Assembly: GCA_003427395.1 (NCBI GenBank)
Contig: BFEA01000035.1
Coordinates: 3,078,330 to 3,142,329, forward strand
Source: Chara braunii
Lineage: Eukaryota > Plantae > Charophyceae
Direction of reading: 5' to 3'
DNA length: 64,000 bases
A program made the position numbers and the translations under genes. Below the pieces are notes generated by a model, which searched no databases, was not told where the DNA came from, and worked only from the letters and a program-made list of their open reading frames with translations. Positions 234-47,800 of this stretch are shown piece after piece. Positions within the stretch are counted from its first letter, which is position 1, and each line of letters begins with the position of its first letter.

Positions 234-432
234 TATCAATCAATCAATCAATGAATCAAGATAGGCCAGATCAATCAGTCAATCAAGATAGGCCAAATGA
301 ATGAATGAATGAATGAATCAATCAATCAATCAATCAAGCAATCAATCAGCCAATCGATCTACCAATCAATCAAGATCGACCGATAGATTGATTGGCTGAT
401 TGGTTGGTTGGTTGATTGATTGATTGATTGAG
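234..432. repeat. TCAA/TGAA tetranucleotide arrays followed by a complementary TTGA array (imperfect palindrome)
   Basis: (ATCA)n at 317-372 is mirrored by (TTGA/TTGG)n at 386-431. Confidence 0.85.
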
Positions 433-3448: not shown

Positions 3449-3457
3449 TTAACCATG

Positions 3458-6230: not shown

Positions 6231-6239
6231 CTGGTGGTG

Positions 6240-7764
6240 GTTGGGGGGGGGTGTCCGGTTCGGGGGGAGGGGGAGGTTGGATGGGTTATTGTCGAGGAAG
6301 GAGAAAGTGAAGACAAATCCGATGAAGACTATGGCTGCCTATGGGACAGATGGAGGCAGAAGAAGGAACTAAAACGAAGTCCATGGATGCCTTCAAGAAG
6401 AACTAGGAAAAAAAAGGGGGGGAGGAGGAGGAGGAGGAGGACGGAGGAAGAGGACGGGAAGAAGGAAGAGGAGGAGGAGGGAGGAGGAGGAGGAGAAAAA
6501 AAAGGAACAGGAGGAGGGAGGAGGAGGAGAAGAAAAAGGAAGGAGGAGCAGAGGAAAAAGGAAGAGGAGGAGGAGGCGGGAGGAGGAGGAAGAGGAAGAG
6601 GGGGAGGTTGGATGGGTTATTGTCGAGGAAGGAGGAAGAGGAAGAGGGGGAGGTTGGGGGGGGGGGTCCGGTTCGGGGGGAGGGGGAGGTTGGATGGGTT
6701 ATTGTCGAGGAAGGAGAAGGTGAAGACAAATCTGATGAAGACTATGGCTGCCTATGGGACAGATGGGGGCAGAAGAAGGAACTAAAACGAAGTCCATGGC
6801 TGCCTTCAAGAAGAACTAGGAAAAAAAAAGGGGGCGGATGAGGAGGAGGAGGACGGACGAAGAGGACGGGAAGAAGGAAGAGGAGGAGGAGGGAGGAGGA
6901 GGAGGAGAAGAAAAAGGAAGAGGAGGAGGAGCAGAGGAAGAAGGAAGAGGAGGAGGGAGGAGGAGGAAGAGGAAGAGGAGGGGGAAGAAGAAGAAAAAGA
7001 ATAAGGAAGAGGAGGAAGAAAGAGGAGGAGGAGGAGGAAGAAAGAGGAGGGAGGAAGAGGAAGAAGAAGAAGAAGAAGGAAGAGGAGGAGGAGGGAGGAA
7101 GAGGAAGAAGAAGAAGAAGAAGAAGAAGAAGAAGAAGAAGAAGGAAGACGAGGGAGGAAGAGGAAGAAAAGGAGAAGAAGGAAGAGTAGTAGTTCAAGCA
7201 AGCTAACTTAGGCAGGGGTGAGGGGCGGCACATATTTCCCTAGGGATTTAATCAATGGCGTCCACTCGGGCCTCTCAAACCATAATGCCGTCCACGCGAG
7301 CCTCTCAAACCATAATGGGGAGGAGTGTGCATGTCCTTAAGGTCTTCATTATTGACTTGCCGAGGAAGAGCAACCGGAGGAAGAAAGAGGAGGAGGAGGA
7401 AGAAAGAGGCGGAGGGAGGAAGAGGAAGAAGAAGAAGAAGAAGGAAGAGGAGGAGGGAGGAAGAGGAAGAAGAAGAAGAAGAAGAAGAAGAAGAAGAAGA
7501 AGAAGAAGAAGAAGAAGAAGGAAGAGGAGGAGGAGGGAGGAAGAGGAAGAAGAAGAAGGAGAAGAAGGAAGAGTAGTAGTTCAAGCAAGCTAACTTAGGC
7601 AGGGGTGAGGGGCGGCACATCTTTCCCTAGGGAAGTAATCAGTGCCGTCCCTCGGGCCTCTCAAACCATAATGCCGTCCACTCGAGCCTCTCAAACCATA
7701 ATGGGGAGGAGTGTGCGTGTCCTTAAGGTCTTCATTATTGACTTGCTGGGGAAGAGCAACCGGA
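6240..7764. repeat. Purine-rich GAG/GAA repeat containing two duplicated unique cassettes (6240-6420 ~ 6653-6834; 7171-7378 ~ 7558-7764)
   Basis: Near-identical copies, e.g. 'gatgaagactatggctgcctatgggacagatgg' twice and 'gtagtagttcaagcaagctaac...gaagagcaaccgga' twice. Confidence 0.92.
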
Positions 7765-17158: not shown

Positions 17159-18957
17159 GTGACAGGCAACCTGCAATTCCCTGCACCGACTGAACTCCCT
17201 TCCCCCATTCCGGAAGGTTCAAACAACAAGATAAACACGGAAGTTGTCAGAGGCTTGAGATCATTTACTATACTAGTCTACTCAGATATGGAATGTGGTG
17301 CTGACTCCAAACCCAAATAGAGTAACAGACTTGCACGGGCTGTTTTCCGACTGACTTGCGGGAATGGCACCGACCAACAAGACTGACCAACAGGGTCGTA
17401 CATCCAATGGCATCCGTGATAAATCTGTCAACTCCTATTAGTCGGTTCACGCACCAATTCCCAACTCGGTGTAGGACAGTTTTCAGTAGGTGGAGGGACT
17501 GACAACAATGACGGACACCTAACCGCACATGAACACAAGTCACACAACCTTGACCAGGGAATATCTTTTCTCAAAATTTTATTTATTTGTTGGTAGAAAA
17601 CAAATGAAAAATGAGAACTTGATTCAAATTACCGTTCACATGCAGAACACAAATAACAAGAATTAGACTGCGCTGTTTGTATACAAACTGCAAAGGTTAG
17701 AGGAGTTAAACAGGCTGGGTAATACTAGGGAAGGTGGTGCCTAATAATATATATTCGCCTAATGATCACAGGGAGAGGTGCACCTTAATACAAGGGCTGG
17801 ACCAGCTCATACCATTGGTGTCGCCATGTGTGATAGGAGGCGACTGGAATGCCACATTGGACGCTATAATGGACTGTATATTGTGCTCGGGCCAATCAGG
17901 ACAAGTAGCAACTCGTATCTGTCATCTTACTCTTGAGCATTGTAACGATTTGAACATCCACTATGTAACGATTTGAACATCCACTATAATAAAAAAAGTA
18001 TGTTTCTCCATAAATTCGAAAAAATATTCATAATTTGTTCATCATTCAATACAGACCATGCAGCCTTATGAATCGGATAGCCTTCAATGTTACATAAATG
18101 CATTATGAATTAGATTCAATACTGGCATTTTTAAGATCCTTTTCGCACTCGGTGTCCAACCACAAAAGCATTCACACTCGTCAAGAAGAACAACGCCCAC
18201 CAGGGTTGTCAGGCGGGGAACCCCGGGGGCGGAGCCGGAGTGGGTGCATGACCCTCGGATCCTCGACGTGNNNNNNNNNNNNNNNNNNNNNNNNNNNNNN
18301 NNNNNNNNNNNNNNNNNNNNNNNNNNNNNNNNNNNNNNNNNNNNNNNNNNNNNNNNNNNNNNNNNNNNNNNNNNNNNNNNNNNCCCGCCCCCGCCCCTTC
18401 ACCGCTACCAAATTTTCGCCCCTCAGTCAACCATCTCTCGAATGCGCTGATGCACAACCTGCATCAGGGAAGTGCTAGTCCTCTCTGCTCCTATGATGTC
18501 TTGTCTATTTGTCGTTTTTTCTGGGTCATCGTTATGCATCTTATCGTACTTGCAAAATCAAATAACATCAAGAACGTCGTGCAAACAAAACACAGTATTG
18601 CTTATATTCAATCAACTTTAAGTAACACTTGGTTGCTAGACAACGGTACTCCACTTGTTATTGCAGAGAGGCGAGTTTTGCTGGCTTCGTTTTTTTTAAG
18701 CTAGTTGAAGCCATTTAACATTTCTTAGCGATTCCTTGCTGATGTTCAGGTGTTTCATCCATATGGCTTCCACCGGGTCGCGCACATTAACTTTAGATCG
18801 GAGCAGTCTGTATGTTGATTTAACTGTTATATTGCGTAATGATCTGGCATACCTTGCCCCTACCGGATGTGCTTGTCCACAACCATTCGGCCAGGTTCAG
18901 GGGCAGCTGGTATATCATAGTATTTGGGAGAAACATTACCCTGTAGCTTTTTTCCAG
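17159..18957 (+). mobile_element. Degenerate L1-type LINE fragment (APE endonuclease motifs), copy 1 of a tandem duplication; contains an N gap
   Basis: NCKG at ~17685 and NIYSPND...VIGGDWNATLD at 17743-17862. Homologous to 18958-19120 plus 29750-31030. Confidence 0.7.
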
Positions 18958-22916: not shown

Positions 22917-25900
22917 AGCGTGCGTCTGTCGAACGTACACGACTATGATGGCACCATGCGCGTGTCGCACTGGTTGCAGGCTGCTACACATGTGCTGACT
23001 CTGACCAACACTGGTCAGGAGTTGTGGTGCTCGTTCGCAACTAAATTGCAAGGCGGCGCGTTCTCCGCATGGGAGAACTATTATTTCCATCGTACTCGTG
23101 CAGGTGAGGCTCCTACTCGAGCAAATTTCACCGCGTTCCTCCATGACCACTATGACACTCTCCACGATGCGACAGACGCCTTAGATCAGGTCACCCAGAC
23201 GCAATGGTGCGGGTCCTCCGCACCAATCGATCTTGAGCGTCACATCAAATTGTTTTAGGACGCCTGCCTCATTTGTGATGAGGCACTCCTACCTAAGGTC
23301 CTTTTAACCGATAGGTTCATTGTTAGTTTTTCGACTGACTATCGCATCGAGCTCTGACAACAAAGCTTCGCCTCCTCAGAGCATGCCTACGAGGCTGCTC
23401 GACAGTACCTGAAGATGAGGAGTCGCTTTCCTTCGACACCCCATCTTTGCGATCCACCACCGCCGCCACCCAGTCACGCGGTGCTACTCACGGTCGATCG
23501 TCTTTCGCCGGCCGCTTTCGCCGACCAGCTCGACCTGGAGTGTCATTCTCTCGGCGCTACAACTCTTTGAAGTACGGCGAGGATGCCTCGGCTGAGCTTG
23601 TCCCTACCCTTGGGGGCGCCCCCGAGGACATCGAGCTCCGAGACGTCATCCAGTTGACGCTGTCCCGGTAGCCGAGCGCCTGCAGATGGCCATGTCCGCC
23701 ATGGGTCGTGCGTGCAGTCAAGTTGCACAGGCTGGCGCCCGCACGTTCACGGTTCCTCGGATAGACCACTCGCAGGGTTTTGTCCCTTGTCGTGGAGCTT
23801 TATCCCTTGAGGAGCCCTTGAGGAGCATGCCGCCCTCGAGGCCCATTGCGGTTGCCTTCGTTGTCGCCAGAATGGACACACCTCCGCGCGGTGTACATAC
23901 CATGGCGCCCTTGATTGACACTATGCTGACATCTCTCGTCAGCGCCGATCTCAGTCCCTCCCCGTCCTTGCCCAGCCAGCCCCACCCAGCTAGCCACGGT
24001 GCAGTGTACCACCGAGGTCTCGCACGTAGCCGACTTCCCAACTACTGAGTCGCGGTTTGCCCCTTTGGCTACCCCACCAGAGGATCCTCAGGACACGACA
24101 GACGTGGTTTCCTCTGCCCCGCCGTCTGTCATGGTAGCGTCTGCCCCACAGCAGACCGCCACATCTAGTCCTCCCCCTCCGAGACGTTCGACGTGTCGCG
24201 CCATTCGCACAGCTCGTTGTAGCTCTCAGCTGGCGATTCGTGATAATGTTGTGTCATCTCTCCTGGATTTGAGCATTCTTCAGGCTCGTCAGGAGTGACT
24301 CACGAAACAGACCAACGTCCTACGCCGTCTTCTCACTCTGCTCTCTGACCCTGATCGCACCCTCCCCATCATTCTTATCCGCTTGGGGACATCTATGAGG
24401 TTGTACCGCGCTTTATGGGACTCAGGCTCGTAGGGAGACTTCGTTCACCCTCACGTGGTGGAGGAAGTTCGCATAGCTACCTCCGGGTCTCGCTTTCCCA
24501 TCTCCCTCGGAGATAACAAAAATGCAGCGCTTCTTCGATCAGACGGTCTCGACCTCCACTTTTTCTTCACCCTCCAGCGATCGGATAGTACCCAGGCGCC
24601 TCGGCACTACGATTCCTCCGCATACTTCGACGTGTTGAAGACTAGGTATGACTTTATCTTTGGCACTCCCTGGTCTCGCCGGTTTCGTGGTACAGAGGCC
24701 GAATCGGTGACCGAGACACTCGTCCTCAAAACGAAGTGTGGTCAGTCCCATCGAGTCCCCTTCATTGGAACCACAGGCGATACCCCTCCCGACCTACCTC
24801 CCCCTCGTTCCTCTGGGTCGCACCTAGACATCGCCTTCACTTCTCGTCAGTTTGCTCACTTCATAGGACAGGAGGACGTCACGTTCTACTCGGTGAATGT
24901 CATGGTTTTTCGCTACGATCCACTCTGTCCCAAGGTTTAGCTCATCTCATTGAAGCCCGATCCCCCCGACCTTCCTCCATCTCCGCGGCTACGATCTCTA
25001 CATCCACCCCTCAGCCTGCGGATGACCTGTCGACATCCCAGGTTCCTACGCAAGTGGCGAGTCCACCCATATGTTTGGTGCTGATGCAGACATTGAGGAA
25101 CTCACGCGGTTCACAACCGACTTAGAGTCCGTCGTTCGCGATTTGAGTCGAGAGTACCGCGGCTTTTTTTTTTCCCTCGTATTACTCATAGAGTGAGATT
25201 CCTCTCATGCGCAATGTTGAACATTCTATCCAACTTTTGTCTGACTATCATGTCCACCATCAGGCACCATACCGACTCTCGATTCCAGAGGTGACGGAAC
25301 TCAAGCGTTAGGTTAGGAGCTCTTTCGACTGGGTTTCATTAAACCCGGTAACTCCTCTTGGGTTGCACCGGTCCTCTTTGCTCGCAAAGCGCACAAAACT
25401 CTTCACCTCTGCATTGACTACCGCGATCTTAACTGTTATACGGTTAAGAACAGTTATCTCATGCTTAACGCGAATGAGCTATTTGACCGTTTGGCAGGCA
25501 AATGCTTCTTTACGAAAATCGATCTTTATAGCGGTTACCACCAGATCCACGTAGCAACAGAGGATCAGCCAAAGACCGCCTTTCGGTCGCGCTTCGGCCA
25601 CTATGAGTTCACGGTGATCACGGTGATCCCATTCGGCCTCACCAATGCACCCGCCACCTTCCAGATGGTGATGAACGACATCTTCAGGAACATCCTTGAA
25701 GAATACGTTCTCGTATACTTGGACGACTTAGAAGATCATCTCAGACACCTCTGCGATGTCCTATAGCGCTGCCAAGCTTAGTAAGTGTCGCTTTGCCCAG
25801 AGCAAAATGAACTTCCCAGGACACCATGTGTCCGATCAAAGTCTCCACATGAACGATGTGAAGATCGTTGCTATTGTAGAGTGGCCTATTCCTACATCTG

Positions 25901-28250
25901 TCAAGCAGCTTCGCAGTTTCCTAGGCCTCACAATTTACTATAGTAATTTCATCGAGGGATATGCAAGGTATTCCTACGTCCTTACTTCCACCCTCCTCCG
26001 AAAGAACCCGTTGTGGTTTTGGACACCCCTGTGCGAGGACGTCTTTCGCGCCATCAAGAAGGTGGTGACTTGTGCGCCGGTTTTTCACCTCCCCAATTTT
26101 GATTGACCCTTTATCGTCATCACCGATGCGTCAGATTTTGTAGGAGGAGCTGTACTTTCTCAAGTGTTTCCCTCTCTTCCGGATTCACCTTATCCCCATG
26201 TTCCTCCTCTGCCCCCCCCACCCTTCCTGCTGACACTGCTTCTCTACTAACGCTTATCCTCCCACCACTTCCTTCCACTAAAAGTCCTCCCGTTACTTAC
26301 TCCCCGACCATCTGGGAGGATGGGACTGTCGAGGCTCGTTTTGGGGATTGCCCGATCGCTTTCTATTCCCGTCAGCTACTGTCTGCCGAGATAAGCTACA
26401 TTGTCGATGAACGTGAGGTCTCGCAGTAGTTTATGCTATTCGGCATTGGCGTCATTATCTGCACGAGGCGCCCTTCACAGTGCGCACAGGCAACTCAGTT
26501 GTCCAGACTTTCCTCACGAAGTCCAAACTTTCCCTCGACAAGCGCGTTGGTGGCGTGACTTATCCGAATTCAGTTTCATTACTCGGCCTATGAAGGGTGA
26601 AACGAACTGCGTCATCGATGCCTTGTCCCGCCGTCCTACTCACAATCAGGAACCCATCCATCTTGCTGTCATTTCCATCACCACTCTTGATCAGTCGGTG
26701 ATCGACGCAAATCGCACTCGGTACCGCCACTACCCAGATTATTGCGTCATCCATGCGGCACTGAGGAGTGGCAAGACCGTTCCCTTATACTTGCTCGGTG
26801 AGAACGGTCTCGTGTACTGACGCGGCAGATCTGGTCAGCTAGAACCACGTATCTGCGTTTCCTCCACTGGATAGCTCCGTGTCCAGACTATAACAGAGTT
26901 CTATGACCAGACAATTGTCGACCATATGGGCTTCCACAAGAAGTTGGCTCGTGTTTGCTGCCTGTAAGTCTGGCCGAAGTCCAAGGACTTTGTCAAAGCC
27001 TACATCCAGGAGTGTACTACGTGCCAGAAGGTGAACAATGTCAACCACCTTCCGTATGGGTTACTTCAGCCCCTACCCATACCTGAGGGTCGTTGGCAGG
27101 TCATCTCGATGGATTTCATTGGCCCCCTTCTTCCACCCACTGAGCGCGGTCATGATGTTATATTGGTCGTCGTCGATCGCTTCACGAAGCGTGCACGCTT
27201 TATCTCGTGTCGCTATCGCATTAGCGCTCGTGAGGTCGCCGACATCGTTTTCGACCGAGTCGTGAGAGATCACGGCTTACTTCAAAGCATCATCTCCGAC
27301 CGCGACCCGCGCTTTACCAGCACATTCTGGCGATGCTACACAACGTGTACGGATCCCAACTCTGCTTCTCATCGTCTTACCACCCTCAGACGGATGGTTA
27401 GACTGAGATCATAATAAAACTCTCGGTAATATCCTTCGAAAGTTTATTAGTGATGACCAGCAATGGGACTTACACTTAGCCCACGCGGAGATTGCATACA
27501 ACCACACTGTTTCGCCAGCCACGGGGATTTCATCATTCTATTGCGGCGTCGGCTATCACCCTCGCGTACCCGCGGATTTCTTACGACTGTTGCGGTTGCA
27601 CCTAGACACTCGTTGTCCTGCACTTGACGAGTGGATCGCCCACATGGCGATGATTATGAAACGCGCATACGAGAGTCTTAGACACTCGTTGTCCTGCACT
27701 TGACGAGTGGATCGCCCACATGGCGATGATTATGAAGCGCGCATACGAGAGTCTAACCGATTCTCATATTTGCATGACGGCTTGAGCGAACCGATCACGA
27801 ATGGATCATCCATTCAAAGTCGGTAAAGATGTGTTCGTCAATGCACTCCACTTGCAGCTCGAAGCGGATACGCTTCACAAGTTCAGGCGTCGCTTCTTCG
27901 ATGTATGCCGCATCCTTCAGGCCATCGGTTCTGATATTGTTGGTAGTCCGGTCAGCTTTCGTGTGAAGCAACCTGATTATTTTCGACAGACTCGCGTACA
28001 CGATGTTTAACATGTCTCCTTGCTGCGTCCTCATCGCAGACCATCCGATCGCTTCGTCGGACGCCCTTATGAGCGTCGTCCACCTATCACGGTGGACGGT
28101 CACGAAGAGTCGTCGTTTTCGACATCGTATCTCGCCGAGTTAGCGACGATACCCCTCCACGCATCGAGTACCTTGTGCGCTGGAAGGGCTATCCCGATGA
28201 GGAGGATACTTGGGAGCCCATCGAGCACTTGGAGTACGCTCGGATGTTGA
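22917..28250 (+). pseudogene. gag-pol of the chromovirus (disrupted)
   Basis: gag: YDGT..VSHWL...KLQGGAFSAW. Knuckle: CLRCRQNGHTSARC (23853-23894). Protease: ALWDSGS. RT: KIDLYSGYHQI, PFGLTNAPATFQ, VYLDD. RNase H: VITDASDF. Integrase: LLQPLPIP..WQVISMDFI, SDRDPRFTS. Chromodomain: YLVRWKGYPDEEDTWEPIEHL. Confidence 0.95.
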
Positions 28251-29385
28251 TTTGTGCACACCATTGTGCTCATCGTGCTGAGACATCTGCTCCTACTCAG
28301 CCGACCGACTATCTTCCTCCTCCTCCGGCTGAGGAGATTGCTGAGGACGAACCCGCTCCCTCTGAGGCCGTTTTCAGCAGCAGATGGACGCCTCTGCGCG
28401 TCCACAACGCACTCGTCGACGCCCTCGACGTCTCGACGATTAACACTCTGATCATCTACGATCTCCTTACTTACTCACACCATCAAAGTACTCCATCATC
28501 AACCTCTTCAGGATGTCAACTTTTTGCGGCTCTGCTTCGACATCTACTCGACTCCTGCTTCATCGACGTTATCGACCACCTCGACGACTTCAGTCACCTT
28601 CTTGACTTCAGCCATCTTATCAGCTTCAGCTACTTTTGACGTGACTACTTCACGCCACCACCCTACCCTGTACATCCCCTTGCATCTGTCGCATGATGAT
28701 TCTTACTTAGCTGGGTCACTTTGAGTTGGGTCTCCCTTGGTATCTCATAGGCATTGGGTCCGTAGCTTTATCTTGGTTTCTCTGCTCCCAAATCTAGCCC
28801 CTTCCTCCCCCAATCGATGAGTTGTGTGCATGTTTCCCTCACCCACTGCCCTCATCACCCTAGTGCCGACACTTGCATACCTTCAGTTAGGCATATCTCC
28901 ACCATATTTTAGGTTTCCCTTCTCATGGTCGACCCTGCATGGTGTCACCCTTTCTGTTGAGCATTACCCGCCTTGATGGTCTATCTGTTAGGGTCATTGG
29001 TTTTGTTTCCCTACCAGAGTCTGATGAGTTATCCCACATTCGTGTGTGACTGCCCTTAGGAGTTTCGATTCTTAGGCTGCATTCAACCCTTCTGAGACCA
29101 TCCCACTTTTAGTGGTTCAGGGACATGACATTACTTGTGACATATTGTTTTTTTTCGTTTCAGCACTAAGGTCATTGCCTCTAGGATTTAAGGGTTGTAT
29201 CATGCTACATTTCATTTTCTGATGATAGTTAGGATGTGTATACCAAACATTTGCTTTTTAGTTGACATTCGCATGAACTCCGCATGGAGTTCCGCATCCT
29301 AGATTTCTCGACTTTCTTTATTGTAGAGTTTTGCTGCTTTTACGGATAGCGTGTTTATGGCTCTTCATTACAGGTATGAGGATCG

Positions 29386-29749
29386 TGCAGCGGGCCTCTA
29401 TCTGCCCTGGCCTACAGCCAGGGCCTATTCGGCTATTTGCCAGTCCGACCTATGGGACTAGATCGTGGCCCGACCCCACAGGCCGTGTACTGTTTCAGTC
29501 CAGTCCAATCCTGTCTGGTATCACTGTCGGTACCAAGCCAGTCCAGTCCAGTCCAGTCCAGTCAGTCCGCTAGGGGTATACCGCAGCTGCAGTCTGTATT
29601 TCCTCAATTCTTCATTTTTGCACATCTTGGAGTACGTGGGTGTTGAGTCTGCGTCGGAGTTGCGTTGTGCCTTACAACTCCATCTCTACCTCCTCCTTCG
29701 TCAACCTTCCTCCATCCTGACGGACCGCCATCCCGGCGGTTCCAACACA
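29386..29749 (+). repeat. 3' LTR
   Basis: Diverged copy of 19121-19431 with two internal insertions, preceded by an eroded purine tract (AGGTATGAGGA). Confidence 0.93.
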
Positions 29750-31030
29750 ACATAGTAACAGACTTGCACGGGTTGTTTTCTGACTGACTTGCGGGAATGA
29801 CATTGACCAACAAGACTAACCAACGGGGTCGTACATCCAATGACATCCGCGTCTAATCTGTCGACTCCTATTAGTCGATTCACTCGCCAATTCCCAACTC
29901 GATGTAGGACCATTTTCAGTAGGTGGAGGGATTGACAATAGTAACGGATACCTAACCGCACATAAACATAAGTCATACAACCTTGACCAACGATTTTTTT
30001 TTCCAAAATTTATTTATTGGTTGGTAGAAAACAAATAAAAATTAAAAAAATAAAAACTTAATTCAAATTACCGTTCAAACGCAGAACATAAATTATAAGA
30101 ATTAGACTGCGTTGTTTGTATACAAACTCCAAAAGTGAGAGGAGGAAAAAAGAAATGTTTAGATTTTAGTTAATATATATTTGTCTAACGAATACAAGAA
30201 GAGGTGCACCTTCATATAAGGGTTGGACCAACTGATACCAAGGGTGTCGCCGCGTGTGATAGGAGGTGACTGGAATGCCACAATGGACTCTATAATGGAC
30301 TATATGTTGTGCTGAAGTACCGGCCAATCAGGACAAGAAGCCACTCGTATCTGTCATCTTACTCTTGACCACAGTTTTGTAGATCCTTTTCACCCTCTTT
30401 ATCCAACCACAAGAGTATTCACACTCATCAAGAAGAATAAATCACCAGGGTTGTCAAGCGGGGAACCGCGGGGGCCGGGTGGGGCCTTGCTCCCCAAATC
30501 CCCGACACGAGGATCCCTAACCCCCACCCCCGCCCATTAACCCTTGCCCATCCACCCGCCCCCCTGCCCCAACCTGTTACTCCCTCGTCCCTTCACCCCG
30601 CTACCCTCACACCCTTTCATCCCCCCTCCCCCCCCTCGCCCCTTCACCTCTGCCGAATTTTTGGCTCTGAGTGAACCATCTTTCGAATACGTTGACGCAC
30701 AACATGCATTAAGGAAGTGTTTGGCCTTTCTGCTTCTGTAATGTCTTGTCTATCAGTAAATCATTGGTTGCTAGACGGAGGTACTCCACTTATCATTGTA
30801 CAGAGGCGAGTTTTGCAGGTTTTTTTTAGCCTTTAAAACCATTTAATATTTCTTCGCGACTCCTTGTTGATATTAAGGTGTTAGATTAATTTTAGGTCGT
30901 AGCGTTGATTTAACTGGTATATTGTGTAATGATCTATGGCATACCCGGCTCCTACCGGATGTGCTTGTCCACAACCATTCGGCCAAGTTCAGGGGCAGCT
31001 GGTATATCGACGTATTTGTGAGAAACACTA
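29750..31030 (+). mobile_element. Remainder of LINE duplication copy 2
   Basis: Resumes at 'agtaacagacttgcacggg', as at 17321; GGDWNATMD...FVDPFHPLYP..RVFT endonuclease motifs. Confidence 0.75.
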
Positions 31031-31319
31031 GCCTTTTGTCGTCATCCTGCCATCCTGAAAACCTTGATTCCTTACAATTCTTCTTTTTGGCTCTGGTGAG
31101 GTTTTTTGTAGGGAGTTGTCAATACCTACTGTAAATAGATCTACGACTATTGTCCCATTCGGGTTGTAGCATACCACATTGCCTACCTCTCCTTGGCGGA
31201 CTTGGATTGCCATTCAGACAGATTCTTGCAGGGAGGGTTCCTTTCGGAGATTTTCCACTAGCTCAGGGGAGAGAAGGTGAACAACAGTCGTATTTTTCAT
31301 CACCACTGCAGGACACCCT

Positions 31320-31794: not shown

Positions 31795-33330
31795 TCAGTC
31801 GATCCAATCCTGCCTGTCTGGATCCCAAATGTCCCTTATTCTGAGTACACCCCTTCTACTTCGACCTTGCCAGGGGGAGTCCGTGCAGCGAAGGACTTGG
31901 CCCCTACCAGAAGGGATCGTTGCACAGATCTTCCCTTGCCTCTTGCCTTGGTGAGTTGGGTGAAATATTCTCTTGTTGAGTTCAGTCTCTTGGTATTGGT
32001 CATTCTCTCTTCTCCAGTTATGTGAGTGGGTTGACATTAGCCGATGTTTCAAGAACTAGTCTAGATATTTCTTCCAAGGCGAGGCCCTTCCATGGTATAC
32101 GACACCGCCTAGCAGCTTTAGGTTTTTGTGACAAATCAGGGAACCCTAAACCCAACTTCTTTTATTGTCAAGATCCGCAGAGAAACTCTGTGTCACGTAT
32201 CTCCGGACTTCTCCGCGGTCTCGCCAATTACTATATAATAGACTCGAAGCGGCAATGCATAGTTAGATTATCATATATACTTCGTCATTCTTTGGCTATG
32301 GTATATGCTGTTAAATTCAAGCTTCGCTCGTGGGCTAAGGTCTTTGCTATAGCAGGTAAAGATCTAAAGAAACCACGCAATGACTGTTACTCAGGTTTCG
32401 AAATCCAGACTCCCAGCTGGCTCTTTCGAGCCACATTTCTTCGTAGAGGTTCGCTCGAGCAGAGTTAAAGAGCAGACGTTTGAGCCATTGTATGGTCAGT
32501 GCCTTGGTTTGTATTGCTGGGTCGATTACGCCCGGTCCCCCTTTCATTTTGGGTTGGATTATGGATTGGCATGCGCCCCTATTGATCACATTGTGTTTTT
32601 CGTGGTCCTCTCGCCATAAAAATCAACTATTTGTCTTTGGAAAGGAGGATGGTGGCCTTATCCAATCCCCAAATATCCGACCTATACCAAACAGAGTGGG
32701 CTAGCGCATTGTTGATTGCAAGGGACTGTCTCATTGGTAAGGTATGTCCGTCCTTCCATAGTGCTAGCTTTTCTAAGGGCGGTTTTGATATCCATTCATT
32801 ATTTACTGTTGGTCTGCCATTTGTTGATAAGGAGACCACCAACACTCGGATGAGGGTCTCCAGATCCTTGGCTGCTTCGGGGGCCTCACTCCTTGGTGAC
32901 GGATCTACCAGTCAAGGGTCTTATAAGGTTATTGGCAAACAGCAAGCAAATGACTTCCTTGGTTATCAAGGTAATTTGTATCCTCTTGATGTCCTTATGC
33001 GCCCTCATGTTCGCTGCTAGTGCCTTCATAATTATGACAAAAAGAAGCGGTTTTGTCGGGTTCCCTTGTTTGACAAATCTTTGGAGAGTGATGGGCGGTG
33101 CAAGGTTGTCATTGACCATGACCCTTGTCGTTGCATTATTGTGCAAAATTTTTAGCTAGCGCCTAAAGCTTGATCCAAAGTTCAACTTTTCCAAACATTT
33201 GTCCTAGAACGTCCAATCTACGTAGTCATAGATATTCTTAAAGTCGATGAAGATTATTGTTGCATTACATTTTACGGACTTTCTTCTTATGAATCCTGCC
33301 GCAAACATTAAACCTTGGGTTAAAGCCCTG
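31795..33330 (-). mobile_element. Degenerate L1/Tx1 LINE ORF2 (RT and downstream region), interrupted at ~32093-32377
   Basis: IIFIDFKNIYDYVDW, RFVKQGNPTKPLLFVIIMKALA, LLFANN (LFADD-like), PKMKGGPGVID...KALTIQWL, GVLRIRDIW. Confidence 0.88.
32093..32377 (+). pseudogene. Group II intron maturase domain X fragment, probably an organellar DNA insertion
   Basis: RLAALGFCDKSGNPKPNF...SVSRISGLLRGLANYY...RLSYILRHSLAMVYAVKFKLRSWAKVFAIAGKDL matches domain X motifs (RG..NYY; YIL..S.A...A.KFKL.S..KVF...GKDL). Confidence 0.85.
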
Positions 33331-38669: not shown

Positions 38670-40760
38670 AAAGCATAATAGTCCAATCATAGGGGTAATG
38701 CAAATATTATCTATTTCGCAGTCCGAGCAATTAGACCTATAAATGTGATAGTGATTAGCCATTATAAGTCCGACGCATCGTGCGGGTGCATATCTGTAGG
38801 AGGTCGAAGCGTATGATGAGAAGGTCGTTAATAGTCAACGATGACGTATGCTATCACCACCAATATAAGGACTTTCAGTGTACAAGTGCTCAGTCAAATA
38901 TTGAGCTTCTCTTATTATAACAACGCGGGTTAAGGCTCTCCGAGTCTCCTGAAGTGGTGTTCCAGATCCAAATAAACACCATCTGCGCTTCGGAAGTTCG
39001 ACCAACCTTTGGCGATATCTCGCGTTTGAAACCCAATGGAAGTAGAGCGTATCACTGTGAAGCTACTGAGAGCACCTCGAAACATTCAGACAATTTTTTG
39101 TCCTAGATTCAAAAGAAAATGACGCCCGCCTCTGACTATCCCAATGTAGCCAAGCCACTCGGTTGGCGTGCCATCGAAAACCATAGACAACCTTTTTGCC
39201 CAGATGATCCAGTTCACCTTCATAGTGTCCTTGGCAAGACGATATCTCGGAATGGTGAGATCGCGTTGCACGCCATCCATCTGTCCACAAAACAAGCATA
39301 TGAGTCATTGACGAGTTTCATAAGCTCACATTCGTCGAGTCGAAAAATCGACATATGAAAGTTTTTAGTTGCTAAGGGTTTGGTACGGAAAAATTAATTG
39401 ACTCGTTCCAACCCGATGTTGAGATATTGTGGCTTTGCCATTCACATAATGGCGGCTACCCTGGTTGGAAACAGGATGATAATCATGAGCCGAACCATCA
39501 TCTGAGAGAAAGAGCATAGAGTAAGGAAGATCAATTATTAGTCGAACAAGCAAATCGAATTACATTTACTGGCCTACGTAAAAAAATTAACCCATCAACA
39601 TCCGTTCAAGTATAGCTTGGTCCTGCTAATAGAAAGAGGACTTGTAAAACTCGTACATGAATGTATAAGTAACTCGCCGCCTGTACAGTGAGCTTAAATG
39701 TAGAAACAGTTGGACTATCAGTGTTAAAATTAAAAAAAAAAAAAATCTAGATTTTATCCTCGTCAAGCTTAGATATATCATATATCCATAAAAATAGAAA
39801 AGGTGAGACAAAATGTATCTACCTTATTAAGGAAAGAATAAACAAAATGCGTTGCCATTGGCGTAAATTGTGACTGACTGACGGCCTGATGGACGGTGGT
39901 CCTCGTAAGGTAAAACTTGTCACAAGCGTAAACTATAGTCCCGACTCTACCCCTTGCTATGATGTTGTCCTTTTCACTACGGTGCATGACTTACTGAACT
40001 GAACAAAACAGAAAGATTCATCCTCACCATCATTGTTAGAGTAGAAGCATGAGAGATGAAAAGGACTAACAAAAATAAGTCGACACATTAACCTAGCTGA
40101 AACCTTCCAATCCAAACATTGATATGAAGTTTTTAAGTCTCTAACAATCAGAGTCAAACAAGGTTTGAGAGCAAGAAAAGTCATCGTTATACCAAGATAC
40201 CAATATTTTTCACGATTGCCTTTCCCTTTTCACACACAAGTTTTTTTTTCTCAGAATCTGCATACAAAATCAAACCAAACAAACAAAAAAAAATCACAGC
40301 CCCACGATCAAGTCAAACATTCAGTTCACACTGAACACACAAATGAACATTCAATGAAAGACAGAGTCAAGCAAGTGTAGGTTCACACGGGCGCGAAGGG
40401 ATGCGAGTGCCTGAACTGGAACGGTGGTCCAAGGGTGAGTCTGGTCACCATCGAATGGACTCTTGGTGGAACGGACCACTTCGTGTTTGCAACTCTTTTT
40501 GACGAGTTATTATTGACCTTTAAGTGAATAAGTGAAGTGTCGATGTGCCTCCCTAAGAAATGACCAAGTAGTCATCGGAGGTAGGTAACTCAGTGTAGAA
40601 AGGAGATGCCGTCGATGCAGGAATCTCAACTGTCTGGTCAGCAACCCATCTGAAAACGCCGGTACCCAGCAGCACCTACCACGTTGCGTGAAAGCGGCAA
40701 AACCCTAGCAGGAGGTCCAGAAATACAGCTGGCTGCAGGATATCTAAAGCTGATAGGAGT

Positions 40761-40808
40761 GGACCCGGTTTCCAGCAGGCGCTGCTCCCCACCAATAGAT
40801 GGAGCTTG

Positions 40809-40854
<46 letters not shown>
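40761..40854 (+). mobile_element. Minimal non-LTR retroposon insertion (structured tail plus poly(A))
   Basis: TSD GATAGGAGT at 40752-40760 and 40855-40863. Confidence 0.85.
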
Positions 40855-40856
<2 letters not shown>

Positions 40857-42152
40857 TAGGAGTCCCTTGCTAGGTGCCATTCAGATATCCGAGGTCAAGT
40901 AGGCCCATCCCCGCTATTATCAGGGACAGACATATCATATCTAGCCTGGATGAGTTGGAATTTACTGCCCCATACATGAATTACTAACAAGAGCCTTGGG
41001 CACTGGGCCCTGATTTCCAACAAAAAAAAAACATAAAAAAAAAAGTAATAATAAAAATAAAAATAAAAATAAAAATAACGAGAGCACAACCAGACCCCAC
41101 CTATTTGGACCCCGAACGCATGTAACTGTCCGTTGCAAATCACAGACGCTCGTTTTCTTCACCATCCAGACAGGCACAGGATTTCTTCCATCCCAACAGG
41201 CCTGGTCTTACAGGTCCTGGCCCACGTGTCCAGGCTGGATGCATGTGCCCGCACATGCAGAATAAAAGTGAGACCTCCACATCCGACCCAGCCTTGTAGA
41301 CCTTATCAAGAAGATTGCACCCCCTCAAAACTTCATGAAAGTCCCAGTTTCCAGCCGGCGATAATCCCCACCACTAGATGGAATGGTCCGAAAAATTGTC
41401 TTCCTAGGGAGGGCTGCTCCTATCACCCTTCCTACGGCAGTAGGACAACGAACGGCCTTTTTGTATTTTTGGAGGAAAAAAAAAAAAAAAACGAGCCCGG
41501 GGCAAAATGGCGGCATGTCTGTCCCGTTTGCACAATCTCTGTGCCATGCCTCACTCTCTTACGTTTCGCTGAGCTATCATGTCGAATCCAAACTCTGCCC
41601 TCTCCTTGCCCACTACACAATGCACGTCCTGTCTGTCTGCGCTTATTGCTCTTCTACTATGGCTGTTTTGTGGCTGTGCCATGTTTGCACACAGCAATCT
41701 TCTTCTGTTCCCTGTTGGCCTTCTTTTCTTTTTTTTTTCTTTTTTCTTTTTTTTTTTTTCTTTTTTTTTGGCCTACTTACTAATCCCTGCTTCATATGGG
41801 TGTTATGTCTGTCTTTGCAGTTGCCCACTTTGCTTTGTGTATGCCCACATGGAATGGATGCAAGGGCATGAGTCAGCCATGGTTCTTATCACTTTCTTGC
41901 TCACTTCGCACGAAGATGGGAACTAGAACAACAAATGGCCAAAAAAAAANNNNNNNNNNNNNNNNNNNNNNNNNNNNNNNNNNNNNNNNNNNNNNNNNNN
42001 NNNNNNNNNNNNNNNNNNNNNNNNNNNNNNNNNNNNNNNNNNNNNNNNNNNNNNNNNNNNNNNNNNNNNNNNNNNNNNNNNNNNNNNNNNNNNNNNNNNN
42101 NNNNNNNNNNNNNNNNNNNNNNNNAAAAAAAAAAACGGAACTGTGAGGCCCG

Positions 42153-42346
42153 CTGACAGGAATCTTCTATTCTTTTGTTCTCTGCTTGTACTATCTGTAT
42201 AAGGGACGCTGGACCCGGTTTCCAGCAGGTGTTGCTCCCCACCAATAGACGGAGCCTCTTCCTATGTGGTAGTGGTGTCTGCTCCTATCAGCACCACTAA
42301 CATTGAAGGAGAGTTGTTTCAAAAAAAAAAAAAAAAAAAAAAAAAA
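42153..42346 (+). mobile_element. Same retroposon family, 5'-truncated copy with poly(A)
   Basis: Core at 42203-42255; TSD AGGCCCG. Confidence 0.8.
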
Positions 42347-42736
42347 GGCCCGGCCCTGGAGCTGTCTTCAGCCAAGAGCCATGAAAGCAGAGATAGAGTA
42401 AATACAATTAATTACTACCATAAATTATATTTAATTATTTGAATAGGATTGTGTGTGAATAAGGGCTCAATCTTATTACATTCTCTTTTATTGTGTCTAA
42501 TGAAATTCATTCTATTAAGATGGATGGATAAGTGGGAGGTACAGGCTGTCTGCCCCAGTCGCCCCTTGGGTGCAGAACCAACCAGCCTCCCTGCCCCCTT
42601 TTCGCATCAGGTCGGTCCACCTAAGAGACTGCTGGGAAGACTGGTACTCAGGTCCTGGTCACTAAATCGAAGGACTATCTGCAGCATAAAAGGGAGACTT
42701 AGCTACTCATGGTTTGCCAGGCGTCCTGCGCCGTCC

Positions 42737-43112
42737 GTCAATCCTCTGGGCTTCCAGGGTAATCAATGCTGGCAGGCAACTGCAAGAGTTCAATACGGAT
42801 GTGAGTTTGTAAAAGGGACGGTGGACCCGATTTCCAGCAGGTGCTGCACCCCACCAATAGATGGAGTGCCCCCCCCCCCCTCGTGATGCTAGAGGTGACT
42901 GCTCGTATCAGCACCCCTACCACCCAGACGGGTGTTATTATTTGTAACATAGGACATGCCTCAATTTGTTCTGCATATGTTTCTCCATATGTTCTCGAAT
43001 GGGACGCTGGGCCCGGCTCCCAGCACGTGCTGCTCCCCACCCACGAATAGATTTGGAGCATTGGAGCATTCCTCCCCCCCCCCCCCCCCAAAAAAAAAAA
43101 AGAAAAAAAAAA
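42737..43112 (+). mobile_element. Two further adjacent copies of the retroposon tail (cores 42815-42869 and 43001-43059)
   Basis: Shared core; the second copy has an A-tail and an imperfect TSD AGGAC(A/C)TG. Confidence 0.75.
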
Positions 43113-44557
43113 AGGACCTGTTTCCACCTCTCACCAAATCAATGTGCAAAACGAGAATGAATCCTCCGCAAGATTATGGAAAGATATGCTGCCATAATGT
43201 GTTTGCCTGTTGTGCATGTGGTGAGTGGTGAGTGGTGCAGCGAGGCCCATAGACGGATCCAGTGCAGGCAGTGAAAGTCGTAGCTTACAGTTCTGCGGAT
43301 GTTTTCCTCGATGCGGGGCCGGCCTTTGCAGTTCCATGTCCCACGCGTCCAACAACCCACAAGAAATGGGAGAACGACGTTCAAAAAATTGGGAAAAAAG
43401 TTTAAAAACAGGTGTGATTGGTCCATCAGTTCTTGACACGCTGCCATAAGGACACATTAGTGGGGTCTGCCGTGTGGTCCTCCTGTTGTCCATCCTCTCA
43501 GCCAATCCGTGTCAGAAACTGCCATCGTGATCTGGCAAAGGTGCACATTTGTCCAGCCTATAGAGGGCTGGTAGGCCTTCTCGGAGACCCCCCTCCGCCC
43601 CCCCCCCCCCCCCCCCTCCTCCCCCCCCCCTTCAGAACTGCCCTACAACAGCAGCGTTGGCTTCATAGGTCGGCGGGTCTGCCGTGTGGTCCTGCTGTTG
43701 TCGATCCTCCTCAGCCAATCGGCGCTGGCAATGCCATCATGACCTGGTGGCATGCACATTCGTCCAGCCTATTAAGTGCTACAAGTACTCAACAACCCTG
43801 CCGCCCGCCCAAATAGAAAGGGGCACGTGTGTGTGTGCGCTAAAGAAAAGGAAAAAAGGAAAAGAAACTGCCCTACATAAGCAGTGTTGGCTGTGTAAGA
43901 TCCGAGTATGCCCACCTATGTGACAGCCAAGCCCCACTACCGGTAGGGCTCCCCCCTTCAGTGTTTAGAAAATGCGAGGGCGTGTAAGGGTCCCACTTCA
44001 TCTACGGTCATGGAAACAATGAGGACTACCATCCCCTCTGCAGCACTGACGCACGTCCAAAACCCATCCACACATCCACACACGTCGTTCCCGGCTCTGC
44101 ACCTTGCCCACTAACAACCATGGGGACCTTAGGCCCAGCGTTCCCTCCAATTTCTCCACATCTTCTTAGGCCCTTAGGCCCCAATTTTCCTGAGTGTAGG
44201 CCCCAATTTTCCTGAGGGTCGGAAAGCTGGTCACCCTCAGTAAATGTCCACTGTCAGCATGTGATAAATGTTACATAACGAATAAATAAGTTAATAGCCA
44301 TGAGATTTCAAATTTCTGTTTCGAGCCCTAGAGCACTAATGTTTACCCGGGACTGAGACGGACCCATACTTGCATCCGACACATAACTGAACCTGGCCCA
44401 TGCTCGCGTCAGATACATGACTGCTCCTGATTCCACCATATTTGTATTGGATACGTAAGTGAACCTGAACCATATCTGTGACAGCTATGTCACCGTCCTC
44501 TATTTCATATATTTATGGTATGGATATATTTCACATGCTTCTTTTCTCACCTGCTCA

Positions 44558-44683
44558 GTCAATCCCCTGGGTGCAGGGTAATCAATGCTGGCAAGGATGC
44601 AGATGTATTCAGATGTTTAATTGTGCATTGGGACACTGTGCCCATTTTCCAGCAGGTGTTGCTCCCGACCAACAGATCGGAGT
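44558..44683 (+). mobile_element. Older copy of the retroposon tail
   Basis: CAGGGTAATCAATGCTGGCA plus a diverged core TTCCAGCAGGTGTTGCTCCC. Confidence 0.65.
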
Positions 44684-44812
44684 AACCAGGCAGTCTGCTA
44701 GGAGGGGGTGCTTTTTTTTTTTTTTTTTTTTTTTTAAGCTATGGTCTTCTCTCAATTTCACCTCACACTACCTACCTACCACTTATAATTGTAGGCACAC
44801 GAGGAACCCCGG

Positions 44813-47800
44813 TGTCGAGCGCATCGGTCCCCCTCGCAGGGTGGGACCCTCCCGACTGCGTCACGCAGGAGTTGGTCGACCTCGTCGCGAAATACACATG
44901 GAGCTTCCGCAAGCCGCTCCGGCCGAGAGTGCCAGCCATACCTCTCGCGAGCCCTACGACAGGGTAGGGCCTACGCGAGGCACGACTTTACCTCCACATG
45001 CGGGAGCTGTCACCTCCCTTCGGTGGGCGTATCCCCGCCGAGCTACCAGTCCACACTACGAAAGCTAATCAGTTGCAATCGCAGAGGTAGACCAATCGAG
45101 GGCATTTCTAGTTCGCTGTAGCACAAGGGGTACACACGGTTTTACGCCTCTATCGAACCCTCACGCAAATCGACGCACTGGGGGGTTGAAGTCCCAAGCA
45201 CGATTCGTCGTCGATCGACTATGACACATCCCACATACCACACGTTACACCACAATACTCACATCCACGGAACGACATCAAACAAACAACACAACAACGC
45301 TCCTAGCCCCTTTAATAATCATCCCATAACCTTCCGACGCGGAAATCGGATAGGCGACGCGCGCAAGGCTTAATATAAAACCGCGCGGACGCAGAGTCTT
45401 TCCATATCGACTAGCAGTGTAGGAATACGCAAGCAGTTGCAATGATGGCGTACTATGTAGTGCCCATAATCAAGCGGTCCCTCGTGGATCTGAGTACCGT
45501 TTATGACACTCAAGTGTCAATCTTGAAGTATCGTGAGGGTCGAGCCCTTCACGATATTGCATGTTGAAGGAACAGTCGTTTGGCCTCCGCGGCACCTTCG
45601 ACCCTTGGGCTGAGTGTCCTGGTGGACAGGGCAAATAGGCTTTGCGCGGGGGGTGATTCCTTATGCGCAGAGTCTCAGCCCTGAGATGTCCTGGATAAGA
45701 ACCTCGGATCCAGGTCAAAAACCAACGTCCGATTTTTTTTATTTTTATTTTTTTTAAACAACACTCCCTGTAGTGTTAGTGTTGTTGCTAAAAGCAGGCA
45801 CCACTAGGACCCGGGGAAAGGCTCCATCTATTTGTGGGGAGCGTCACCTGTTGGAAAACGGGTCCAACGTCTCTTACACACAGAAAAGCAGGAAAGTATC
45901 AGAAGGTACCACTGAGTAAGACACCTGCCAGCATTGATTACTCTGTTCTCCAGACGATTGACTGCGGAGGTTGCTAGTGAGAGAATCATTTTCATCCCAA
46001 CCCCAATAATCATTCCTTCCGCTCCATTCCATAGCGGTTGGCTTAAACTGAGAAAGATTGAGAAAGACATCTGCTAGCAAAAATTGCTCTGACTGTGGAG
46101 GTTGTTGGGAGCAAGAAAAACCTCTTCGCCCAACATCGGGCGCCAGATACCTACTTCAGAGAAACTAGCTCTCGCTCTCCCAAAAGACGTTTCCACCTCG
46201 CTCCCCGTAGACGTCGGCTTATGCTGTTCCATACCAATGCATGTCCATCATTTGAAGCAACATCCGACTAAGAACTTCAAGACGCAAAACGGTAAAATAA
46301 GGGGGGTTCCTTTCCTCTCTCAATCTTAACCCCAATTAAACTCTTAAGCGCGGAATCTTTAGATCACGCGAACATACAAACATAAGTATGTTTTTATATA
46401 TAAAGGGTTATAAATACATGACGATCATTTCTCACAATCAAAGTGAGACTCCGTATGTGTTCGCAGACAGTCACAGACAGTCAAATTCAAAGTCCGAACC
46501 ACAAACATATTTGCAATCATATCAAAGATTCAACCAAAAGTTCACGCACTACACAGGGTCAACTTCAACCATTCTCTGCGCTCACACCCCTCACTTTAGC
46601 CACACAAACCTCCACCTTAGCGTAGCCTTCCAACAATAAAGTACTTAACACCTTTGTTAAATGACCATTGAATAAAGTCTGGGTAAAAACACAATGAAAC
46701 AATTCAGACCACATGGCTAAAGTCTTTAGGTTGAGTGGCGAGAGTGAAGTGGAGTTGAGTCGTAAACCGACGAATCGGCAACCGACTTGTTATCAGTAAT
46801 AGCAGAAGATGATCCTCGTAGGATCAAGCTGAATTTAGCCCAAATACTTAATCAAACGATCAAGAGGACCTGTAACATAAAACAGACCAATCCCTAAGTT
46901 AGATCTCTATAAGTCAAATGGAGAATAGTCTCCATATCACATCTCACTCAAAGTCGTCATAATTAACTAAGTCTGAATCTACCCCTAAGCAAGTGTAAAA
47001 GGAAGGGTAGACCTTGACAGAATCTCCTCTATACAGAGTGGATTGCCAGAATCGCCACCTGTCAAAATGTAATCAATCTCCTCTACACTAAGAAAATTTC
47101 GACAGCGCTTCCCGTAGCAAAAGTGTCTTCTCAGAATTTATACAAGTTCAAATATGAAAACAAAAATAATCTTTAACACTAGAAAGTCAAATTTTATTCA
47201 ACTCCCTGAATTAGTAAAAATTTACTTATTTTAGAAAGCGGACTTCCCAGATTTATACTAAGTTAGATACGAATTCAAAAACAAAACTTGAGTTTAATTA
47301 AGTCAAAATTTGACTAACTCCTCGGATTTGCAAAAATTTCGGCAACGCTTTCTGTAGAGAAAGTAACTTACTAAGATTCATACAAAGCTAAGTACAAAAC
47401 ACAATGATCCGAGAAAATGAAAAAATTAATCTACGTACCAAAAGTCAGCTAAAAAAATGGAAGAATTGAACAAGCTCCTATCGCTCTAGCACATGACGGG
47501 CAACTAAAGCAACTACCTGTCAAACAGAAACTCCGACTAAGTAATAATATCACTTAACCAAATGCAAGACCAACCCACAAAAAGGCTCTCACTAACCCAA
47601 AGTTAACCTTGTCAAACAATAATTTGTAGTCTTTCAATGATTTATCCCTTATACCCAGCTTACATAAGGCATAAAACTAAACCATCCAATCTTATGGAAA
47701 CCTGTCTAGCTCAACCATTGAATATACACAACACATGACACTACAATTTTTCTCTTCCTTAGGCATACGACTGGGATGTGCAACATAACCGCACTGAATT

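Follow-up and report, generated by a model that had tools for sequence, protein, structure and literature searches.

A conserved 3' tail with a compensated hairpin, common to diverged L1-type LINEs of Chara braunii

In a 64-kb stretch of the Chara braunii genome (GCA_003427395.1, contig BFEA01000035.1, positions 3,078,330 to 3,142,329 of the forward strand; hereafter the window), a short motif able to form hairpins recurs within a few kilobases, mostly ahead of a run of adenines. This raises the question of which RNAs left these copies and whether the motif served as a signal for the enzyme that copied them. Template choice by L1-type enzymes is debated, as mammalian L1 reads mainly poly(A), whereas most other long interspersed nuclear elements (LINEs) read a folded tail. 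A preliminary description of the locus proposed a structured tail that is shared by different RNAs and licenses their retroposition. Based on our data, the motif is a LINE tail, and the copies in the window are 5'-truncated 3' ends, i.e. 3' untranslated regions (UTRs), of different L1-type LINE families. Most probably, it represents a conserved 3'-terminal RNA module of poly(A)-tailed L1-type LINEs, which the reverse transcriptase (RT) of the element would read for template choice.

To locate the copies, we used a profile built from the motif and a covariance model, the latter run over the window with filters off, and read the region 40.5-46.5 kb directly. Both searches together place seven copies of a 53-nt core in the 64-kb window, all between 40.76 and 45.87 kb. 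The six copies listed in the preliminary description were recovered at their places (nhmmer E 1e-13 to 1e-20; cmsearch 48-84 bits), but a seventh, diverged one (c1b, core at 41342-41388) had been missed. Beyond these seven, neither the profile nor the covariance model gave another core match in 64 kb at E < 0.1. An 18-nt sub-motif occurs five times in the window compared to 0.03 expected occurrences. The core of about 52 nt described before is real, but the module is longer, with an additional long hairpin and a conserved loop ahead of poly(A) in five copies. The copies, with their target-site duplications (TSDs), the stems S1 and S2 of the core and the candidate closing helix P0, are arranged as follows:

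40752-40863 (+): copy c1, whole; TSD GATAGGAGT at 40752-40760 and 40855-40863
40761-40805 (+): core remnant of c1, 5'-truncated inside hairpin S1; short-tail type
40806-40812 (+): end of c1, UUGUUCU, followed by poly(A) at 40813-40854
41342-41491 (+): copy c1b, whole; diverged core without the 5' arm of S1 at 41342-41388, poly(A) at 41476-41491
within c1b (+): long hairpin with stem TAGGGAGGG/CCCTTCCTA and conserved loop CTGCTCCTATCA
41950-42124 (no strand): assembly gap within an A-run, between A-runs 41941-41949 and 42125-42135
42146-42352 (+): copy c2, whole; of all copies nearest to the consensus
42146-42152 and 42346-42352 (+): TSD of c2, AGGCCCG
42153-42320 (+): element part of c2, 5'-truncated in the upstream block; poly(A) at 42321-42346
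42203-42255 (+): core of c2 (53 nt), with GGGAC at 42203-07
42208-13/42221-26 (+): S1 of the c2 core, loop 42214-20
42228-31 (GGTG) / 42240-43 (CACC) (+): S2 of the c2 core
42234-38 (GCTCC) / 42251-55 (GGAGC) (+): candidate pseudoknot arms of the c2 core; A-rich loop AATAGAC at 42244-50
42256-42320 (+): third hairpin region of c2; stem TAGTGGTG 42270-77 / CACCACTA 42292-99, conserved loop 42278-91
within 42256-42320 (+): outer stem of the third hairpin of c2, CUCUUC/GAAGGAGAG
42316-42320 (+): GTTTC of c2, able to pair with GGGAC (candidate closing helix P0)
42523-42951 (+): copy c3, whole; family-specific 3' UTR from ~42523, without A-tail
within c3 (+): upstream conserved block ~42740-42778, variable spacer, core 42815-42867 with two private mismatches (42821 G and 42848 A), long hairpin
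42952-43121 (+): copy c4, whole; core 43001-43059 of the GCTGGG/CCCAGC, CGTG/CACG subfamily with a 4-nt insertion; short-tail type
42952-59 / 43114-21 (+): imperfect TSD of c4, AGGACATG / AGGACCTG
43090-43114 (+): poly(A) at the end of c4, preceded by a C-run
44563-44711 (+): copy c5, whole; upstream block ~44563-44600, spacer, decayed core 44630-44683; interrupted within the third hairpin by a T-run at 44712-44735
45733-45966 (-): copy c6, whole; upstream block ~45924-45966, spacer, core 45821-45873
within c6 (-): S1 GTTGGA/TCCAAC, long hairpin, A-rich tail 45733-45755

These copies carry the hallmarks of L1-type retrotransposons, namely poly(A), TSDs and 5' truncation, so that the retroposition proposed before stands. 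The preliminary description had counted four copies with A-tails and TSDs of 7-10 bp; A-tails are even present in five of the seven (c1, c1b, c2, c4 and c6), but clean TSDs only in c1 (9 bp) and c2 (7 bp). The 8-bp TSD of c4 contains one mismatch, and a search around c6 and c1b found none. An 8-mer past the tail of c6, which equals the start of its own core, was rejected as TSD and judged coincidental because upstream block, spacer and core are contiguous as in the other copies. Copy lengths are graded from 48 to ~430 nt with ragged 5' ends, as from truncation: c1 is only ~50 nt of element plus 42 A, c2 and c4 retain 44-50 nt of element ahead of the core, and c3, c5 and c6 reach an upstream conserved block, CAG(G/A)GTAATCAATGCTGGCA, separated from the core by a spacer of ~40-50 nt that is unalike from copy to copy. 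Besides, the insertion point of c4 is the exact end of c3, and c2 begins 17 nt past the original flank of the c1b tail. The cluster is a pile-up of nested, 5'-truncated retroposed tails.

For the abundance of the motif and the continuity of the assembly, contigs of two DNA runs (X1 and X3) and raw reads of two oligo-dT RNA runs, all from this organism, were placed on 41300-43130 at 80% likeness. The assembly gap touches no core copy, with the TSD of c2 at 42146 as nearest feature, and is located within the A-tail of a separate, core-less insert. No contig of the DNA runs spans 41734-42105 (depth 0 in X1 and near 0 in X3, with 3.3 in one bin). Therefore, continuity across the gap is unproven, and only the "5.5 kb" spacing given for the cluster rests on it. 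The core-less insert (~41495-42135), in the zone between the c1b tail and c2, is single-copy (depth 4.7 and 15.8), ends in an A-run and has AAAACG on both flanks; over 41300-41707, one contig agrees without any difference. The insert may represent a processed pseudogene or a retroposon of another type. Two further observations concern the neighbourhood of the copies. A different high-copy repeat is situated between c2 and c3 (42391-42522), covered by one contig with 10 differences at a depth of ~4,900 (X1) or 3,000 (X3). At 40993-41023, an S1-like sequence (CACTGGGCCCTGATTTCCAAC) directly precedes an A-rich tract; it is a weak profile match (E 1.6) and may be a decayed or variant tail.

The core belongs to a very large population. 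Summed contig depth over the c2 core reaches 7.8e5 and 1.3e6, compared to 4.7 and 15.8 for the adjoining single-copy DNA, which gives ~0.8-2.7e5 copies per genome (0.8-1.7e5 from c2 alone and up to 2.7e5 for c2, c3 and c4 together). This is in agreement with seven copies per 64 kb in a genome of ~2 Gb, and more than 20,000 contigs per DNA run touch 41300-43130. Likeness starts sharply at 42203 (GGGAC) and stops near 42255 (GGAGC), while the loose ends beyond agree only at 0.36-0.47. Upstream of c3, depth is lost stepwise, from ~2.9e5 in the core to ~2.7e3 in the block and 70-435 in the family-specific UTR, and contigs running from block to core contain spacers of 18-39 nt with unlike sequence in between. 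Among nine copies, the mean pairwise identity is 0.81 for the core compared to 0.51 and 0.43 for the 45-nt flanks and 0.48 for shuffled sequence. Across diverged lineages, the 3' end is thus kept far above the rest of the element, which is the behaviour of a stringent tail, and the earlier claim of one tail common to unrelated upstream sequences holds. In the RNA runs, ~0.05% of the reads fall on cores, a share not above the genomic one, with a 4:1 strand bias. As 95% of these reads continue into unlike sequence, their sources are numerous other copies plus a small number of abundant transcripts. The core is thus shown to occur in poly(A)-selected RNA but not to be expressed autonomously, and oligo-dT capture of genomic A-tails could be the source of the strand bias. 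In the RNA runs X5 and X6, a few core-bearing transcripts dominate at 42192-42255, where the loose ends agree at 0.98 (e.g. …CTCACTTGTAATCAT before 42192).

The link to L1-type elements comes from contigs that carry the core next to coding sequence. Scanning metagenome contigs with a 20-base core pattern yielded 11 hits; nine of these are chance matches in GC-rich, prokaryote-like DNA and two are true (L005 and L010). A third contig (L012) was reached via one protein, the single result of a protein word search with a profile made from one open frame of the core. L005, L010 and L012 all belong to the BFBZ01 contigs of the NCBI assembly GCA_003427375.1. Scans of viral and prokaryote genomes for the core gave no match. 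In L010, the module ends a ~650-nt 3' UTR downstream of a decayed C-terminus of the second open reading frame (ORF2) with a zf-RVT domain (PF13966, 29.1 bits compared to a cutoff of 27.5), and this UTR follows the same plan of upstream block and spacer ahead of the core as the window copies. The zinc-binding domain zf-RVT typically occurs in L1-type reverse transcriptases of plants. No relatives were retrieved when the zf-RVT piece of L010 was used in a word search. L005 contains two core copies, one of them ~300 nt past an ORF2 C-terminal remnant (weak match). The ORF2 C-termini of L005 and L010 are 35% identical in protein, and in DNA only the core (85-92%) and 63 nt of ORF2 (76%) can be aligned, while the 3' UTRs are unalignable. 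Since these elements are diverged and yet have the core in common, the tail is common to diverged LINE lineages; their assignment to L1 rests on zf-RVT, poly(A) and TSDs. Two details of these contigs are worth recording. The 3' UTR of L010 contains, ~200 nt upstream of its true core, a second, weak match to the S1 part at 282-348 (-) (15.8 bits, E 0.006). In L012, the short-tail copy at 560-760 is located between the arms of a ~27-bp inverted repeat (…AGCCGAAGTCGGGTAATGGCCCCG / CGGGGCCATTACCTGACTTCGGCT…), i.e. inside palindromic host sequence and not between direct TSDs.

With regard to the fold of the core, we segmented and aligned 11 copies and used slid partners and 500 shuffles as controls. 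Paired cells amount to 82%, compared to 25-52% with partners slid. Three pairs are changed on both sides, compared to 0.9 in the shuffles (reached by 6/500), and the covariation score is 0.125 compared to 0.088 (reached by 0/500). S1 is a 6-bp stem with the loop CCCNNUU, and the variants GCTGGA/TCCAGC, GCTGGG/CCCAGC and GTTGGA/TCCAAC noted before are present as described: A-U is replaced by G-C in the subfamily of c4 and L012, C-G by U-A in c6, and a U-G wobble occurs in L005b. Two independent pairs of S1 are thereby changed on both sides, as in a compensatory stem-loop. The read consensus restores pairs broken in single copies, and the pair-breaking letters of c3 are private to it, as the family has C at 42821 in 93% and T at 42848 in 99% of the depth. 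The hairpin S1 is supported by these data and, as claimed earlier, covaries. S2 (GGUG/CACC), one base past S1, has no double change among the 11 copies. The CGTG/CACG variant of c4 is real, since 96% of the DNA depth of the c4-type subfamily shows C at 43026, with CACG as partner, either via the 4-nt insertion (~75% of depth) or in the canonical register (~25%). Therefore, CGUG/CACG is a compensated closing pair of S2, and this helix is fairly supported.

The third element of the core is a candidate pseudoknot. Its 5-bp stem GCUCC/GGAGC is perfect in six of the 11 copies, with G-U wobbles in c3 and c5; two G-U cells are found in the aligned register and three more result from misaligned 3' arms. 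An expressed core variant with a different loop 3 still keeps GGAGU. The geometry fits an H-type pseudoknot, with loop 1 of 2 nt, a pseudoknot stem of 5 bp, loop 2 of 1 nt and an A-rich loop 3 of 7 nt. RNAfold predicts either S2 or the pseudoknot stem, each as a plain hairpin. The pseudoknot put forward in the preliminary description is conserved and sterically possible, but covariation is not shown, so that it stays a candidate, plausible but unproven. An Rfam search gave 0 matches at the gathering score in the whole window and none to the core at E<=10 over 40.7-46.0 kb, so that neither a known self-cleaving ribozyme nor another Rfam family is matched; the earlier suggestion to look there for a known family returned nothing.

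Downstream of the core, two types of tails can be distinguished. Short tails (c1, c4 and L012) have only 7-30 nt from GGAGC to poly(A) (7 in c1, 11 in L012 and 30 in c4), whereas long tails (c1b, c2, c3, c6 and L010) contain an extra long hairpin with the conserved loop CUGCUCNUAUCA. The stems of this hairpin differ around the same loop (UAGUGGUG/CACCACUA compared to UAGGGAGGG/CCCUUCCUA), with four compensated pairs, and its apex resembles S2, as the stem is again GGUG/CACC and the loop contains UGCUCC. In L005a, an unrelated long hairpin occupies this position. What had been considered a fourth, separate hairpin was reinterpreted as an outer stem of the long third hairpin. In both types, the module may be closed by P0: in all five informative copies, the GGGAC that precedes S1 can form 4-5 bp with the bases adjoining poly(A), which read GUUUC, GUCCU, GUUCC, UCCC or GUUU. 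This helix is part of the minimum-energy folds of c2, L005a, L010 and L012, and its chance in composition-preserving shuffles is 2-4e-4, calculated for copies that are not independent. If real, the closing helix makes the module one domain and places poly(A) beside the core with or without the third hairpin.

Taken together, we favour a role in template choice, as stated at the outset, a reading modelled on stringent LINE tails and the R2 3' UTR and also proposed as RT-recognition tail in the preliminary description; by this analogy, it is the best explanation of the motif. The transcript would end in S1, S2, the pseudoknot across the A-rich loop and, in many lineages, the long hairpin, with GGGAC closing the domain by pairing with the terminal pyrimidine-rich bases. 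The ORF2 protein, i.e. the RT, would bind this domain and thereby select its own RNA, and binding would place the adjoining poly(A) in the RT active site, so that "stringent" template recognition would be combined with a poly(A) tail. Each new copy would start at poly(A) by target-primed reverse transcription and usually be cut short at the 5' side, which would fill the genome with short tails that all carry the module. Several observations weigh against this reading. Only 11 copies could be aligned and they have common ancestry, which makes the covariation counts statistically weak. A single compensatory change is found in the pseudoknot stem (G-C to A-U, in the decayed c1b), which otherwise never varies. 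In nested folding, the core is energetically no more favourable than shuffles (z +0.36), and the full module of L010 alone stands out (z -3.5); thermodynamics alone does not support the fold. Although the extension towards an autonomous LINE, as suggested before, led in L010 to an ORF2 C-terminus with zf-RVT ahead of the tail, it did not yield a LINE of full length that includes endonuclease and RT, and L005 provided the weak ORF2 match only. Finally, the core-less, A-tailed insert beside c2 hints that RNAs without the module are copied as well and that recognition is perhaps not absolute.

Among the other explanations, an action of the module on the transcript itself, as a signal for 3'-end formation, polyadenylation, stability or export that every LINE lineage has kept, appears unlikely, albeit less so than those discussed below. 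It would fit with the position of the module, always 12-85 nt from poly(A), with the conserved AAUAGA 14-20 nt ahead of the A-tail in the short-tail copies c1 and L012, with the conserved UUGUYY before the tail and with the 4:1 strand bias of the oligo-dT reads on the core. However, in long-tail copies AAUAGA is ~70 nt away from the tail, the strand bias can be explained by oligo-dT capture of genomic A-tails, and the RNA share of ~0.05% does not exceed the genomic share. A poly(A) clamp of the ENE type, a triple helix, was rejected because there is no U-rich internal loop, and none of the predicted module helices contains paired U-tracts. It is less likely still that only the primary sequence matters or that no selection acts, in which case a young master lineage or template switching would have spread one tail and any helix other than S1 would be fortuitous. 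In favour of this, S2 and the pseudoknot stem show little variation, the folding z-scores are unremarkable, loops are conserved as much as stems, and the modular build with variable spacers would fit recombination. In contrast, flanks at random level beside a core of 81-94% speak against simple youth, the ORF2 C-termini that have the tail in common are just 35% identical, and compensatory changes are found in each of S1, S2 and the third hairpin.

We consider it very improbable that the window copies form a separate, non-autonomous family resembling short interspersed nuclear elements (SINEs) with a tail borrowed from a LINE. Such a family would account for copies that are short (48-430 nt) and non-coding and for the block CAG(G/A)GTAATCAATGCTGGCA common to three of them, but the same block and spacer plan is present in the 3' UTR of the ORF2-bearing L010. 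In addition, the copies have no tRNA, 5S or 7SL head and no Rfam or ARAGORN match, their 5' ends are ragged as in truncation, and the stepwise loss of depth upstream is as expected for 3' UTR families of LINEs. ARAGORN found no tRNA in the window, and the copies show neither a head of the RNA polymerase III (Pol III) type nor a defined 5' end. The part of the preliminary description that had the tail licensing "different RNAs" must therefore be given up: distinct passenger RNAs or SINEs, a Pol III head, a tRNA and an Rfam match were all absent, and the sequences that differ upstream belong to the 3' UTRs of distinct L1-type LINE families, shortened at the 5' side and with a hypervariable spacer ahead of the core.

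Structured 3' tails of LINEs are known, including those of plant and algal L1 and the R2 pseudoknot (PMC3472496, PMC12503042), and the locus is thus not an undescribed system as had been suggested. The closest likeness is to elements of the L1 clade in monocots and Chlamydomonas, whose 3' ends are conserved and form hairpins and from which it was proposed that the ancestral green-plant L1 required both a specific tail and poly(A) (Ohshima 2012, PMC3472496). LINE1-1_ZM with ZmSINE2/3 and L1-1_CR with SINEX-3_CR likewise belong to the L1 clade and end in poly(A); their tails likewise comprise a conserved 3' end of ~45-80 nt with the rest diverged and a hairpin with compensatory changes and a conserved loop, and tail sequence and poly(A) are both proposed to be needed (PMC3472496). 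Compared by their described features with these maize and Chlamydomonas tails, the Chara tail has in addition a candidate pseudoknot, a third hairpin that is optional and perhaps a closing helix. It also differs in its ~1e5 copies across many LINE families, with no SINE partner seen in the window.

More distant parallels exist in other clades. In the L2 clade, the tail of an element is recognised by the ORF2 protein that it encodes (PMC4176376), as for the conserved 3' hairpin of eel UnaL2/UnaSINE1 and zebrafish ZfL2, which is common to non-autonomous partners (PMC4176376; Kajikawa and Okada 2002, cited in PMC3472496). In contrast to the Chara tail, these elements end in short repeats instead of poly(A), belong to the L2 clade and have a single hairpin. 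The R2 protein grips a folded 3' UTR, in which vertebrate R2 of the A clade has a pseudoknot and other R2 elements have a stem-loop (PMC12503042). This resembles our case in that a folded 3' UTR domain, sometimes with a pseudoknot, is held by the RT to start target-primed reverse transcription; however, R2 is site-specific for ribosomal DNA, uses a restriction-like endonuclease and has a low copy number, and the Rfam search of the window gave no sequence or model match of the core to R2. Human ORF2p positions a stem-loop near poly(A) (PMC12503042). In human L1 and Alu, an L1-clade enzyme likewise uses a poly(A) template, and the stem-loop before poly(A) may help to position the tail (PMC5135761); that case is relaxed and poorly conserved in sequence, whereas 53 nt of the Chara tail are nearly fixed across families.

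In the literature searched, LINE tails of Chara braunii are not described. Within the scope of Rfam and the literature, the kind of signal is known, while this form appears to be new, with a hairpin, a candidate pseudoknot and a candidate closing helix in ~1e5 copies of poly(A)-tailed L1 of a streptophyte alga. The ~1e5 copies from unrelated L1 lineages, with one folded module beside poly(A), are a natural test case for Ohshima's "stringent plus poly(A)" ancestor. We tentatively raise the possibility, which goes further than our favoured reading and on which we would not insist, that a 3' domain of several helices, closed by P0 and comprising the hairpin, the pseudoknot and optionally the long hairpin, is obligatory for a superfamily of poly(A)-tailed L1 in this close algal relative of land plants. 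If true, this would directly support an ancestral green-plant L1 that read a specific folded tail together with poly(A), a capacity that flowering plants and mammals would have lost later, and it would be the first L1-clade tail with a functional pseudoknot. As the module is short, sharply bounded and available in natural stem variants, it suits retrotransposition, binding and structure-probing experiments. Besides, it is a useful marker for annotating the very large non-LTR (long terminal repeat) fraction of the Chara genome.

Outside the cluster, the window contains several other features. At 32022-32468 (+), an ORF matches PF01348, the maturase domain of type II introns (E 1.5e-12), and may be organelle-derived DNA. 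Frameshifted remains of a Ty3/gypsy-type LTR retrotransposon are present at 24400-28700 (+), with RT, integrase-like and chromodomain-like motifs read by eye. Two copies of another repeat of ~1.6 kb, with G-rich tracts and without the core, are located at 17300-18900 and 29300-31100 (-); this repeat has weak similarity to the ORF2 C-terminus of L010 (tblastn E 1e-5 to 1e-3), and one of its copies adjoins a gap at 18271-18383. Finally, the region 3400-7600 is GC-rich, strongly skewed and of low complexity, and both of its strands contain long ORFs (up to 962 aa) that overlap and translate to runs of S/L/P/F or E/K/R/G.

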